From NCBI RefSeq assembly GCF_902713615.1, contig NC_052160.1:139914737-139978736 (forward strand): a stretch of DNA of 64,000 nucleotides. Direction: 5' to 3'. The stretch comes from Scyliorhinus canicula. Lineage: Eukaryota. The position numbers were made by a program, and so were the translations under genes. The notes under the pieces were generated by a model. It saw only the letters and a program-made list of their open reading frames with translations, was not told where the DNA came from and searched no databases. Positions 41,875-63,217 of this stretch are shown one piece after another; within the stretch, counting starts at the first letter, position 1; every line of letters starts with the position of its first letter.

Positions 41875-41930
41875 ATGAAATGGTTGCTCATTGCACTTGC
41901 GTGCATTCAGCTCTCTGAATGTTTAGTCAG
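41875..41930 (+). CDS. Gene B exon 1 ([19 protein letters not shown])
   Basis: aaaaATG start, donor AG|GTAAAA, TATA box upstream. Confidence 0.9.
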
Positions 41931-44900
41931 GTAAAAAAAATTTTAATTATAAATTTAGAGAACCCAATTAAGGTGGAATTTAGCATGTCCAATCCACCTA
42001 CCCTGCTCATCCTTTTGGTTTTGGGGGTTAGACCCACGTAGTCAGGGGGTGAATGTGCAAACTCAACTTGGACAGTGACCCAGGGACGGGATTGAACCCA
42101 GGTCCTAGGCGCCGTGAGGCAGCAGTGCTAACCACTGTGCCACCGAGCTGCCTAGTCAGCCAGGAATTTGTGAGCAGCCTTGGTTTTGAAGTCTGGATAT
42201 GCTTTGAATGTATCCTCACAGAAGATGATAATTATATCAAAATGTTTGGTATTTGCTTTCAACGTTTCAATTATGTATCTCTCTCTTCCGCCATTCGGAA
42301 TATAGGAACAGGAGTGGACATAAGAACATAAGAACTAGGAGCAGGAGTAGGCCATCTGGCCCCTCAAGCCTGCTCCGCCATTCAATGAGATCATGGCTGA
42401 TCTTTTGTGGACTCAGCTCCACTTTCCGGCCAGAACACCATAACCTTTAATCCCTTTATTCTTCAAAAAACTATCTACCTTTACCTTAAAAACATTTAAT
42501 GAAGGAGCCTCAACTGCTTCACTAGGCAAGGAATTCCATAGATTCACAACCCTTTGGGTGAAGAAGTTCCTCCTAAACTCAGTCCTAAATCTACTTCCCC
42601 TTATTTTGAGACTATGCCCCCTAGTTCTGCTTTCACCCGCCAGTGGAAACAACCTGCCCGCATCTATCCTATCTATTCCCTTCATAATTTTATATGTTTC
42701 TATAAGATCCCCCCTCATCCTTCTAAATTCCAACGAGTACAGTCGCAGTCTACTCTTCAGCTCTGGGATTAACATAGTGAATCTCCTCTGCACGCCCTCC
42801 AGTGCCAGTACGTCCTTTCTCAAGTAAGGAGACCAAAACTGAACACAATACTCCAGGTGTGGCCTCACTAACACCTTATACAATTGCAGCATAACCTCCC
42901 TCGTCTTAAACTCCATCCCTCTAGCAATGAAGGACAAAATTCCATTTGCCTTCTTAATCACCATTAATGGTGGACCATTAATCCCCTCGAGCTTGTTCTG
43001 CCAGTCAATGAGATTGTGGGTGATCTCCATATAGCGGCCTTTGACTTATTCCCTTAGTATCTTTGGATAACAAAAGTCTATTAATCTCAGATTTAAAATA
43101 TATAATTGATCGAGCAGCCACTGCCAGTTGTGGAGAAGAGTTCCACATGACTACCACCCTTTGTGTGTCGAAGTGTTATCAACTTTCAGTCCTGAAAGGT
43201 TCAGCAGCTGTAATCTGTAGACTATTCCCTTAGACGGTGACACCTCAAACAACGGAACTGGTTTCTCTCTATCTACTCTATCTTTTCTCCTTATTATCCT
43301 GAAAACTTTAATCAAATTGCTTCTTAATCTTTTAAATTTGAGGGAATGCAACCCTGGTGTGTGCAAGGCCCTCTCATAATTAATCACGTGGAATGCAGGT
43401 GTCATTCTGGTAAATCTATGGTTATTGATGAAGGCCCCGACTTCTCAACCCTGCCCCTTGCCTGAGGTGTGGTGACCCTCAGGTTAAATCTCCACCAGCC
43501 AGCTCTCCCCCTCAAAGGGGAAAGCAGCCTATGGTCATCTGGGACTGTGGTGACTTTGTCTACCTCTACCTATAACACTCCGGGTATGAGGGATGTGAAT
43601 AGCTGAAACAAGTAAGGTTAAGGGGGGGGTTGTTGGGTTACGGGTATAGGGTGGATACGTGGGTTTGAGTAGGGTGATCATGGCTCGGCACAACATCGAG
43701 GGCCGAAGGGCCTGTTCTGTGCTGTACTGTTCTATGTTCTATGACTTCTACCCCCACGTATTCTAGTCCTTTGGAGATAAAGGTCAACACGAGCCTTTTA
43801 GATTATTCTCTGTACCTGCTTGTTCACAATAGTAACAATGCCTGGATTCTTAATGGGCCGATTTTCTGTCGGGCCCAATGTTTCACTCAGATGTTTGCAC
43901 AGTTCTAAAATGGCTACGAAAGCTCAGGAAATTGGGCGAAGAATCTTCCATTAGCTTTACCCTCAGTCCCTTCTGCCAGGGACGTTGCAACCAGCTGCTT
44001 CTTGGCAACTAGATTGCTTGCACATTATTAAAGTTGTAGCCTCACTCAGGCACCATAACGCAAAACATTTTTAAAAATCTATCTATTCTAACTTCAGGTA
44101 GAAATGTGCTTTTGCAACAAAGTCCATTTTGAGTAGGTGCAATGGAACTCTCAGTGGCGAACAGGATTGATTTTTCTTTCTGCACCAATCTGGATTTTGA
44201 ATTTATTAATAGATGTGGCCAATATTTCTTAAATTTGTAATGTATGCGGAGACAATTTTGATTTAATTATTATATTGCGAAAGGGAATGAAATGCTCTTT
44301 CTCAATGCGTCGCACACAATCAGCATGCATCTCAAATCATGAGAGATGTTATTTAAATGCAGATTGATCTCTCCTGGTCTATTTTGGAAAATAGTTGTGC
44401 TCATTGTGGCCTACTCCCATGCTGAATTTGTATGTTCACAGAATCACAGACAATACACTGCAGAAGAGGCCCTTCGACCCATTGAGTCTGCATCGACACA
44501 TGAAAAACACCTGACCTACCTGCCTAATCCCATTTTATTTTATAAATTTAGTGTATCCAAGTCATTTTTTCCAATTAAGGGGCAATTTAGCATGTTCGAT
44601 CCACCTATCCTGCACATCTTTGGGTTGTGGGGGTGAGACCCACGCAAGCACGGGGAGAATGTGCAAACTCCACAGTGACCCGAAGGTGGGATCGAACCTG
44701 GGACCTCGGCGTCATGAGTCTGCAGTGCTACCACTGCGCCACCGTGCTGCCCTAACCTAATCCCATTTGTCAGCATTTGGCCCATTGGCTGGAATGTTAT
44801 GACATGCTAAATGCTCGTCCAGGTACTTTTTAAAGGATGTGAGGCAACCCGCCTCTACCACCCTCCCAGGCCGTGCATTCCAGACCGTCAACACCCTCTG

Positions 44901-62900: not shown

Positions 62901-63217
62901 TTTGGGGCAAGTACTTTGTTTCCTAACTGTCAAATAAGTATGTTTGTATGTAATGCAATATGTTTGCGTGTAATACCGCATGCTGCAAAAGCAAGTGTAA
63001 TCTTAGAAGCAAACAAATGTAGAAAAATCGGCTGATTTGTTCTTTATTATTTTGCTTGCAGAGAAACTCCAATGGAAAGCAATATTGTATGAGCGGATTT
63101 AACCACATGTCTCTTCCTACTACTGGAATCTGGGTATTTGGAGATGTCTTCATTGGAGTCTACTATACCATTTTTGACCGAGGAAACAACCAAGTGGGTT
63201 TCGCCAAGGCTGCCTAA
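41875..63217 (+). CDS. Divergent pepsinogen A-like gene B, complete, 9 exons, 391 aa: join(41875-41930,46536-46698,48146-48263,52634-52752,53508-53707,54868-54987,60830-60974,61207-61305,63062-63217)
   Basis: All introns are GT-AG and phase-consistent, 1176 nt with no internal stop. Signal peptide [33 protein letters not shown], flap IRYGTGS, six mature Cys, ends GFAKAA*. Confidence 0.94.
42320..42965 (-). mobile_element. CR1 3' fragment in gene B intron 1 (absent from the left arm)
   Basis: [13 protein letters not shown]...RPHLEYC, (ACATAAGA)n tail as read on the plus strand. Confidence 0.88.
44440..46195 (-). mobile_element. Older CR1 RT/3' fragment interrupted by SINEs and a solo LTR
   Basis: [17 protein letters not shown]; reverse-strand GVPQGSVL near 46100. 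Confidence 0.75.
45418..45879 (-). mobile_element. Short solo LTR with nested SINE
   Basis: TG...CA ends, 5-bp TSD CAAAG (45413-45417 and 45880-45884). Confidence 0.8.
46536..46698 (+). CDS. Gene B exon 2 ([19 protein letters not shown]...LANYLD)
   Basis: 163 bp, ttgcag| and |gtaagt. Confidence 0.95.
48146..48263 (+). CDS. Gene B exon 3 ([39 protein letters not shown])
   Basis: 118 bp, DTG motif, gacag| and |gtaagt. Confidence 0.96.
48628..48861 (-). mobile_element. Short solo LTR (234 bp, same family) inserted in a V-SINE
   Basis: TGATGCGACC...TTCACCACA, 5-bp TSD AAGTG (48623-48627 and 48862-48866). Confidence 0.82.
49277..51955 (+). repeat. About 2.7-kb pyrimidine-rich minisatellite (CCGCTGCTGCTCCTCTCCCC-type, 14-21 bp units) in gene B intron 3
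   Basis: Directly visible; almost no A on the plus strand. Confidence 0.97.
52634..52752 (+). CDS. Gene B exon 4 ([13 protein letters not shown]...[17 protein letters not shown])
   Basis: 119 bp, ttgtag| and |gtaagt. Confidence 0.95.
53508..53707 (+). CDS. Gene B exon 5 ([14 protein letters not shown]...[10 protein letters not shown]...LFAFYLT)
   Basis: 200 bp, attag| and |gtgaag. Confidence 0.95.
54868..54987 (+). CDS. Gene B exon 6 ([16 protein letters not shown]...GYWQIHLD)
   Basis: 120 bp, ttacag| and |gtaagt. Confidence 0.95.
55042..59805 (+). mobile_element. Internally deleted L1-clade LINE in gene B intron 6
   Basis: 14-bp TSD AGAATTCAGCTGCA (55028-55041 and 59806-59819), ORF2 motifs, AATAAA at 59780-59785 plus A-rich tail; no ORF1. 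Confidence 0.92.
56887..57769 (-). mobile_element. 883-bp solo LTR inserted into the L1 ORF2
   Basis: TGT...ACA ends, 4-bp TSD CAGG, interrupts MISQ|ATISLI; minus-strand TATAAAAG at 57341-57334 then AATAAA at 57052-57047. Confidence 0.88.
60830..60974 (+). CDS. Gene B exon 7 ([23 protein letters not shown]...NGPW)
   Basis: 145 bp, DSG motif, tcctag| and |gtaatt. Confidence 0.95.
61207..61305 (+). CDS. Gene B exon 8 ([33 protein letters not shown])
   Basis: 99 bp, ctacag| and |gtatgc. Confidence 0.95.
62320..62470 (-). mobile_element. Small L1 RT fragment in gene B intron 8
   Basis: [12 protein letters not shown] and FSGYKL.MAKSE. Confidence 0.65.
63062..63217 (+). CDS. Gene B exon 9 ([13 protein letters not shown]...[28 protein letters not shown])
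   Basis: ttgcag| acceptor, TAA at 63215-63217. Confidence 0.94.

Follow-up and report, generated by a model that had tools for sequence, protein, structure and literature searches.

The stretch of Scyliorhinus canicula DNA analysed here (the window, 64,000 nucleotides; C15:139,914,737-139,978,736 of a 4.22-Gb assembly) carries a complete pepsinogen gene on its plus strand, gene B, together with a second pepsinogen gene on the minus strand, gene A, and the first exon of a paralogue of B, gene C. A preliminary description made from the letters alone had presented B as an intact pepsinogen with rewired chemistry, and we have compared its structure, relatives, residues and transcripts with those of other pepsinogens. 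Coordinates below are positions in the window and residue numbers followed by p belong to the prosegment.

41875-63217, plus strand: gene B, 9 exons, 391 amino acids (aa)
41789-41797, plus strand: TATA box CTATAAAAG, 86 nt 5' of the gene B ATG
41875-41930, plus strand: exon 1, 56 nt; signal peptide (41875-41922), then start of the prosegment
46536-46698, plus strand: exon 2, 163 nt; prosegment and mature N-terminus, with Ser-Arg36p-Phe37p (46630-46638), Asp4-Ser5-Leu6 (46675-46683) and Tyr9
48146-48263, plus strand: exon 3, 118 nt; N-lobe FDTGSS (48203-48220), Leu38Phe, Cys45 and Cys50
52634-52752, plus strand: exon 4, 119 nt; flap YGTGSM (52705-52722)
53508-53707, plus strand: exon 5, 200 nt; Leu121Val; C at 53672, unique to B among the five B-type genes
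54868-54987, plus strand: exon 6, 120 nt
60830-60974, plus strand: exon 7, 145 nt; C-lobe VDSGTS (60882-60899) with Val213, Ser216 and Val220
61207-61305, plus strand: exon 8, 99 nt
63062-63217, plus strand: exon 9, 156 nt including the stop; WVFGD (63131-63145; Ile300Val, Leu301Phe) and Leu298Ile
17766-30060, minus strand: gene A (comparator), 9 exons, 388 aa; A-type elasmobranch pepsinogen A with prosegment net charge +8 and the motifs WKY, EPL, DTG and WILGD
643-698, minus strand: exon 1 of paralogue C (protein P0317), its peptide identical to that of B exon 1; the remaining gene lies left of the window

Gene B is intact, as had been proposed. All its introns run from GT to AG, the coding sequence of 1176 nt forms a 391-aa open reading frame (ORF) without internal stops, and the predicted protein is 100% identical over 391 aa to the RefSeq entry P0304, "pepsin A-2/A-3-like" of S. 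canicula. The exon sizes (56/163/118/119/200/120/145/99/156 nt) and phases are those conserved for pepsinogen A, and gene A and six more genes of the same genomic cluster (G1-G6) share this layout. Pfam recognised the complete aspartic protease domain (PF00026, Asp, 1-315 of 315, E 4.2e-118) and the complete prosegment domain (PF07966, A1_Propeptide, 1-27 of 27, 30.4 bits over a cut-off of 20.5), and the closest solved structure by sequence was porcine pepsinogen 2PSG (E 1.9e-130, residues 17-390). The AlphaFold2 (AF2) model, with a mean predicted local distance difference test (pLDDT) of 84.7 and a predicted template modelling score (pTM) of 0.86, has a prosegment strand and three helices; its top fold match was again 2PSG, with template modelling (TM) scores of 0.94/0.89 over 379 columns, prosegment included. 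The protein has a signal peptide and a prosegment of about 45 aa with Leu6p, Ser11p, Arg13p, a basic residue at 36p and an aromatic one at 37p, followed by Tyr9 in the enzyme. FDTGSS, YGTGSM, VDSGTS and six aligned Cys supply the catalytic, flap and disulphide hallmarks of pepsinogen A, so that both catalytic Asp, the flap Tyr (in YGTGS) and the six Cys are all kept, in agreement with the first reading of the gene.

A search of sequence representatives clustered at 50% with exon 5 returned only distant entries, the best being human PGA4, and a homologue search with human PGA4 gave tetrapods and two sturgeon (Acipenser sinensis) entries only. Full-length elasmobranch proteins were retrieved with a profile (A3) made of a sturgeon scaffold and blocks of the B exons; the profile favours B-like proteins, and nothing is to be concluded from the lack of A- or G-type relatives of other species. 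With it, ten further sharks and rays yielded "pepsin A-like" proteins, of which ten were nearest to B (66-73% identity) and one, from Heterodontus, nearest to A. A maximum likelihood (ML) tree of 43 proteins (LG+C20; supports given as ultrafast bootstrap, UFBoot, and SH-aLRT) contained a pepsinogen A clade (98/95), with the PGC and cathepsin E references outside. Within it the elasmobranch sequences (86/81) were sister to all bony-vertebrate pepsinogen A and formed three lineages, the A-type (gene A and Heterodontus, 100/98), the G-type (100/100) and the B-type (100/99). The B-type clade holds Heptranchias, Pristiophorus, Narcine, Hypanus, Amblyraja, Stegostoma, Hemiscyllium, Chiloscyllium and Carcharodon, three rays and three orectolobiforms among them, in near species-tree order. 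The four full-length B-type proteins of S. canicula and an orthologue from S. torazame made up a Scyliorhinus subclade (100/100) on a stem of length 0.17, in which gene B was sister to the S. torazame protein P0312 (97/90), "pepsin A-3-like", with which it is 90% identical. The duplications that separated B, C plus B3, and B5 thus predate the split of these two species.

Since B is nested in a B-type clade common to sharks and rays, it is a Scyliorhinus-specific copy of mainstream elasmobranch pepsinogen A and not an odd side branch. Of the lineage-specific subfamily suggested before, the five B-type genes and their fully supported Scyliorhinus clade stand, but B remains within a shark and ray pepsinogen A orthogroup; likewise, the comparison with the vertebrate classes set B apart from PGC and CTSE but did not make it distinct from pepsinogen A. 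An identity as pepsinogen C (gastricsin) was rejected, the coelacanth gastricsin and a quail gastricsin-like protein forming a separate clade (99/100). Neither does B qualify as a chymosin, pepsinogen F or pregnancy-associated glycoprotein (PAG), since it falls in the elasmobranch pepsinogen A clade of a tree built without chymosin, PGF or PAG sequences; cym, pgf and PAG have been placed within amniotes and eutherians (PMC13389413).

When the genome was searched with exon 2 of gene B, four more B-type prosegment exons were found (87, 85, 83 and 79% identity), the other genes of the cluster reaching at most 57%. The B-type set of S. canicula consists therefore of five genes, B, C, B3, B4 and B5, the last four examined from 3.2-kb loci and database proteins. 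The full-length proteins are 86% (C, P0317), 81% (B3, P0331) and 87% (B5, P0306) identical to B. They differ at the motifs that had called attention to B: B5 retains Lys-Tyr, Glu-Pro, DTG and WILGD, and C and B3 have Arg-Phe and Asp-Ser, yet DTG and WILGD. C is thus B's twin, as it had been called, in sharing SRF and DSL, but not in the C-lobe, where it has DTG and WILGD. In C and B3, both intact and outside the window, the flap reads YDTGSM, with Asp in place of a Gly76 kept in all 41 other sequences compared; this Gly76Asp is more radical than any change in B.

The residue differences between A and B were as first described (YWKY/YSRF, EPL/DSL, VDTGTS/VDSGTS and WILGD/WVFGD), and on a pig-anchored alignment the charge counts were reproduced exactly. 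The prosegment of B has 9 Lys or Arg (K/R) and 8 Asp or Glu (D/E), that of A 10 and 2; the mature enzyme has 14 K/R, 8 His and 25 D/E in B, and 8, 2 and 24 in A. All 15 B-type proteins have a prosegment net charge between +1 and +6; coelacanth pepsinogen A has +1 and +3, the sturgeon, bichir, gar and bowfin proteins have +1 to +4, and coelacanth gastricsin has 0. Only tetrapod pepsinogen A reaches +5 to +9, with gene A at +8. Similarly, mature B-type enzymes have 12-17 K/R and 4-8 His, and those of tetrapods 3-4 K/R and 1 His. The tetrapod type of electrostatic latch (prosegment about +5 to +9, enzyme with 3-4 K/R) is absent from B, and equally from other elasmobranch B-type proteins, coelacanth and sturgeon. 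From these counts, B lies at the low edge of a normal range, with the lowest prosegment charge (+1) and the most His (8) of the five Scyliorhinus B-type proteins, and gene A is the local charge outlier in the cluster. Fish pepsinogens have been described as having a prosegment poorer in basic residues and an enzyme of higher pI, from which activation under less acidic conditions was inferred (Castro et al. 2012, PMC3298455).

The motifs have precedents as well. Lys-Phe occupies 36p/37p in 9/9 ray-finned-fish pepsinogen A sequences and in G2-G6, so a gastric zymogen can work without the Tyr37p hydroxyl, and Arg36p-Phe37p is a conservative variant of Lys-Tyr. DSG is found in the C-lobe of pepsinogen A in two gar genes (P0295, P0300) and in bowfin (P0298), for which reason DSG as a novelty among pepsinogens was rejected. 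In eel P0308 it is the N-lobe motif that reads DSG. Taken together, the gar, bowfin and eel sequences indicate that Ser for Thr in the catalytic triplet arose several times in gastric pepsinogens. The near-neutral prosegment, the more basic enzyme, Phe37p and DSG, all counted before as rewired chemistry, have in this way fish precedent, and what remains of that idea are small sets of latch and C-lobe changes conserved in S. torazame.

These sets were judged against 38 other sequences. The latch set (Tyr31pAsp, Lys36pArg, Tyr37pPhe, Pro40pAla, Glu4Asp and Pro5Ser) is common to B, its S. torazame orthologue, C and B3, and is not found in B5; Lys36p is present in 35/38 of the other sequences. The C-lobe set (Ile213Val, Thr216Ser, Leu220Val and Ile300Val) is confined to B and its S. 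torazame counterpart, at positions where 33-37 of the 38 keep the common residue. Leu38Phe, Val89Leu and Leu121Val extend to B5 as well, and Leu298Ile, Leu301Phe, Val165Ile and Leu276Val belong to B alone. We take residues 213-220 and 298-303 to be the C-lobe catalytic psi-loop and the strand packing against it, with positions 213 and 300 presumably belonging to the S1'/S2 pockets. Four losses of a methyl or methylene and one gain (Phe301) look like the repacking of a small C-lobe core; Ser216 retains the hydroxyl needed for the "fireman's grip". Some of these changes are conserved in the S. torazame orthologue, which indicates that they are not noise. Over exons 5-6 (105 codons only), the ratio of nonsynonymous to synonymous substitution rates (dN/dS) was 0.63 between B and C, 0.56 between B and B5 and 0.32 between B and B3, with dS of 0.045-0.14, and 0.25 between B and A (dS 0.76).

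Transcription was searched in sequencing runs. In run X1, of 2018 and presumably RNA, contigs cover the B-type exons 4, 5 and 6 at a mean word depth of about 20,000-157,000 (bin means) and almost nothing of the introns. The spliced joints 52752>53508 and 53707>54868 (GT..AG) coincide with the predicted exon borders, and the second was seen also in X2 and X24; a loose end TGCCTGCA before 52634 reads the 3' end of exon 3 and another one reads the start of exon 6. Several B-type copies contribute to this pool: GCA-ATA at 53542-53544 with Tyr-Phe at 53569/53571 identifies B4, and C at 53598 identifies C, B3 or B4. The C at 53672, unique to B, accounted for about 9,000 of a word depth of 75,290 (~12%), which shows that B itself is transcribed and supplies about one eighth of the family depth at that point. 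X1 also holds 0.09 of the words of the exon 4-6 stretch of gene A, where the exonic maximum is about 0.136 and other RNA-like runs have at most 0.03. B-type exons and A exon words being found in the same run, A and B are co-expressed at the level of the X1 sample, the depth of which would fit a stomach library. In a 1.5-Gb sample of an oligo-dT run of 2026 there were no reads on the B exons, consistent with tissue restriction.

For the working of the zymogen, the known structures provide the frame. In pepsinogen, hydrogen bonds join Lys36p to Asp32 and Asp215, Asp11 is the partner of Arg13p, and conservation is strict at Leu6p and Arg13p (PMC4077824). In progastricsin, the aspartates are blocked by the corresponding Lys and Tyr together with Tyr9, an electrostatic hold that gives way in acid (PMC3298455). 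B retains Val4p, Leu6p, Ser11p, Arg13p, Asp11 and Tyr9 and has Arg in place of Lys36p. It is a secreted zymogen of classical pepsinogen fold, with a prosegment made of the first beta-strand and three helices, in which Arg36p (Lys elsewhere) would plug both catalytic Asp until acid releases the prosegment. As B keeps the latch residues, with Arg for Lys, the same acid-released latch as in pepsinogen is to be expected, probably with a weaker overall electrostatic hold (prosegment +1, enzyme -11). Arg is reportedly among the substitutions of Lys36p that make pig pepsinogen activate faster and less stable, in line with an activation barrier that would be lower in B. A weakly basic prosegment on a moderately acidic enzyme (pI ~5) is probably the ancestral fish and elasmobranch condition, and from its charge balance B is predicted to be activated, and to work, at a pH slightly above that of tetrapod pepsin A. 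The latch and C-lobe sets probably fine-tune zymogen stability and the shape of the S1'/S2 pocket of one isozymogen.

The reading that we favour, with a probability of about 0.65, is that gene B would be an ordinary gastric isozymogen with mild, conserved tuning, expressed together with A and without a new function. Several points weigh against it. The gastric site is deduced from the extreme depth in X1 and from the co-occurrence with A; contig depth is a poor measure of expression and the paralogues share many 31-mers; the expression specific to B is read from one unique base and 163 pieces at at least 99% identity. The AF2 confidence is low (pLDDT ~50-70) at residues 41-70, which comprise the latch and linker, and the dN/dS ratios come from small counts over 105 codons, although they speak for constraint, which may be relaxed, and against decay. 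Finally, the Scyliorhinus stem is long (0.17), with four to seven changes at positions invariant elsewhere, and this could reflect a real functional change and not fine-tuning. Such a change is what a less probable alternative proposes, the idea of the preliminary description confined to the stomach: by positive selection the lineage of B and its S. torazame orthologue might have evolved a distinct activation threshold and substrate range through the Arg36p/Phe37p/Asp31p latch and the repacked V213, S216, V220 and V300 loop. B would perhaps be in that case a catshark-specific pepsin isoform with a C-lobe loop repacked also by Leu301Phe in S. canicula, a latch loosened further by the near-neutral prosegment, and a measurably different activation pH and S1'/S2 specificity, one outcome of the adaptive radiation, within a single shark, of 13 pepsinogen A genes. 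The substitutions conserved in two species at positions invariant in 37-38 other aspartic proteases, the long stem and the extreme position of B in prosegment charge and His number among its Scyliorhinus relatives all speak for it. On the other hand, the changes are all conservative (K>R, Y>F, I>V, L>V, T>S) and have natural precedents in working pepsinogens, namely the Lys-Phe of ray-finned fishes and the DSG of gar and bowfin; pairwise dN/dS stays below 1 on exons 5-6, and B is co-expressed in X1 with A and the other B-type copies.

A specialisation outside the stomach (embryonic yolk digestion, oviduct or another tissue), like those of chymosin, pepsinogen F and the PAGs, seems very improbable. 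The only strongly positive run, X1, is of undisclosed tissue, and B and C have a common proximal promoter that bears no detectable similarity to that of A, but the B-type depth in X1 is as expected of the main product of a secretory tissue and the same run contains A exons. It is this abundance of B-type transcripts alongside A exon words, even with the tissue undisclosed, that makes the separate embryonic or oviducal niche imagined in the preliminary description less likely. Moreover, B belongs to a pepsinogen A orthogroup general to sharks and rays and, unlike many PAGs, has no N-glycosylation sequon and has lost no catalytic residue. That B is a redundant copy drifting under relaxed constraint toward pseudogenisation, its odd residues being mildly deleterious noise, is hardly credible. 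It is true that with many tandem copies a loss could be tolerated, that dN/dS towards the nearest paralogues is rather high (0.56-0.63) and that the sister paralogues C and B3 carry the radical flap change. However, the ORF is intact, the splice sites are all canonical, transcript depth is very high with correct splicing, no catalytic or structural hallmark is missing, and S. torazame has an orthologue (90% identity) with the same substitutions. A pseudogene was rejected for these reasons, B being intact, expressed and conserved as an orthologue. What is new here is of modest extent: a latch variant specific to catsharks and a slight change of packing around the C-lobe catalytic loop, conserved in two Scyliorhinus species.

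The surroundings of the coding exons deserve some comments. About 240 bp of proximal promoter and 5' untranslated region (UTR) of gene B are 89.6% identical to those of paralogue C, and the last ~115 bp, including the TATA box, are identical; no similarity was detected between the promoter of B and the 1.5 kb upstream of gene A. An ORF in frame with the gene B ATG extends upstream over 41776-41874 (MILMTIKAATTR...) and spans the TATA box. RefSeq counts the equivalent stretch as part of B3 in its 418-aa model (P0331). Because it contains the TATA box, 41776-41874 is most likely promoter and 5' UTR, and the N-terminal extension in the RefSeq model of B3 is probably an over-prediction.

Repeats fill part of the gene B introns. 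Intron 3 contains at 49276-51956 a 2.7-kb minisatellite with a 20-bp unit CCGCTGCTGCTCCTCTCCCC in ~138 copies (87% match), which gives rise to a spurious ORF of 953 aa and brings the GC locally to 0.70. In intron 6, at 55584-59086, there are remnants of a long interspersed nuclear element (LINE) in the sense of the gene, with fragments of endonuclease (PF03372) and reverse transcriptase (PF00078) in several broken frames. A short interspersed repeat recurs in both orientations in the introns (44540-44785, 47577-47770, 52251-52563, 61477-61682, 62016-62240 and 62540-62737) and yields ORF-like translations; it is probably a family of short interspersed nuclear elements (SINE). As for gene A, its flap reads YGSGS (Thr77Ser), a feature common to the Heterodontus orthologue, and its protein has one N-glycosylation sequon (NHS).

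Gene B is one member of a large cluster. A search of the genome with the Pfam Asp domain gave ~18 exon-5 matches at 139.51-140.09 Mb, on the same contig as the window. The six genes assembled from the left end of the cluster (C15:139,505,001-139,705,000) are a cathepsin E (G1) and five G-type pepsinogens (G2-G6), the latter intact, closely related and with SKF (Lys-Phe at 36p/37p). Two of them, G2 on the minus and G4 on the plus strand, are near-identical inverted copies. The exon-5 loci of the remaining cluster genes include one additional A-like gene, another that is more divergent, and four that we take to be PGC-like in exon 5, judged against human PGC. A catshark ctse/pga/pgc cluster of 18 genes within 580 kb has been described (Nagasawa & Inokuchi 2026, PMC13389413), with flanking genes at 139.03 and 140.76 Mb in its supplement. 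It is the same locus, the coordinates of the flanking genes fitting this contig, and B is counted there among the pga genes, so copy number and synteny of the cluster are already published. The text and supplement of that paper deal with copy number, phylogeny and synteny, and a B-type subclade, latch or active-site substitutions and expression were not found described in them.

S. canicula keeps together three old pepsinogen A lineages, the A-type, G-type and B-type, and its five B-type copies vary in the zymogen latch, in the flap and along the wall of the catalytic loop, their products being apparently co-expressed. The cluster is thus a natural series in which prosegment charge, the 36p/37p latch and the packing around Asp215 can be set against activation pH and specificity in aspartic proteases. 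It also illustrates that tetrapod pepsinogen is the wrong baseline for calling a fish zymogen unusual.

Compared with the best known system, porcine and human pepsinogen A (2PSG, 3PSG; PGA4 = P0018), gene B has the same Pfam domains, the same 9-exon layout and the same fold down to the strand and helices of the prosegment (TM 0.94), at 55-56% identity. Both catalytic Asp, Tyr75-Gly76-Thr77, the six Cys, Tyr9, Leu6p, Ser11p and Arg13p are common to them. They differ in charge, the pig and human prosegment having +9 against +1 in B and the tetrapod enzyme 3 K/R and 1 His against 14 and 8, and in the motifs, where Lys36p-Tyr37p, Glu4-Pro5, DTG and WILGD of pig and human correspond to Arg-Phe, Asp-Ser, DSG and WVFGD of B.

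The elasmobranch orthologues (e.g. Chiloscyllium P0329, Heptranchias P0344, Carcharodon P0353 and Hypanus P0333) belong to the same orthogroup (100/99) with 66-73% identity, have the same type of prosegment and resemble B in charge (prosegment +1 to +6, enzyme with 12-16 K/R). Unlike B, they have Lys36p-Tyr37p, Glu4-Pro5 (Glu4-Ser5 in Stegostoma), DTG, Leu38, Leu121, Ile213 (Phe in Carcharodon), Leu220 and Ile300-Leu301. The ray-finned-fish pepsinogen A (sturgeon, bichir, gar, bowfin, eel and herring) is like B in Phe37p and in its weakly basic prosegments (+1 to +6), but it forms a separate bony-fish clade and keeps Lys36p and WILGD, and its DSG comes without Val213, Val220 or Val300. The closest of all, S. 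torazame P0312, shares with B the SRF, DSL and DSG motifs together with Phe38, Val121, Val213, Val220 and Val300, and differs in having WVLGD instead of WVFGD and a prosegment of +4 instead of +1.

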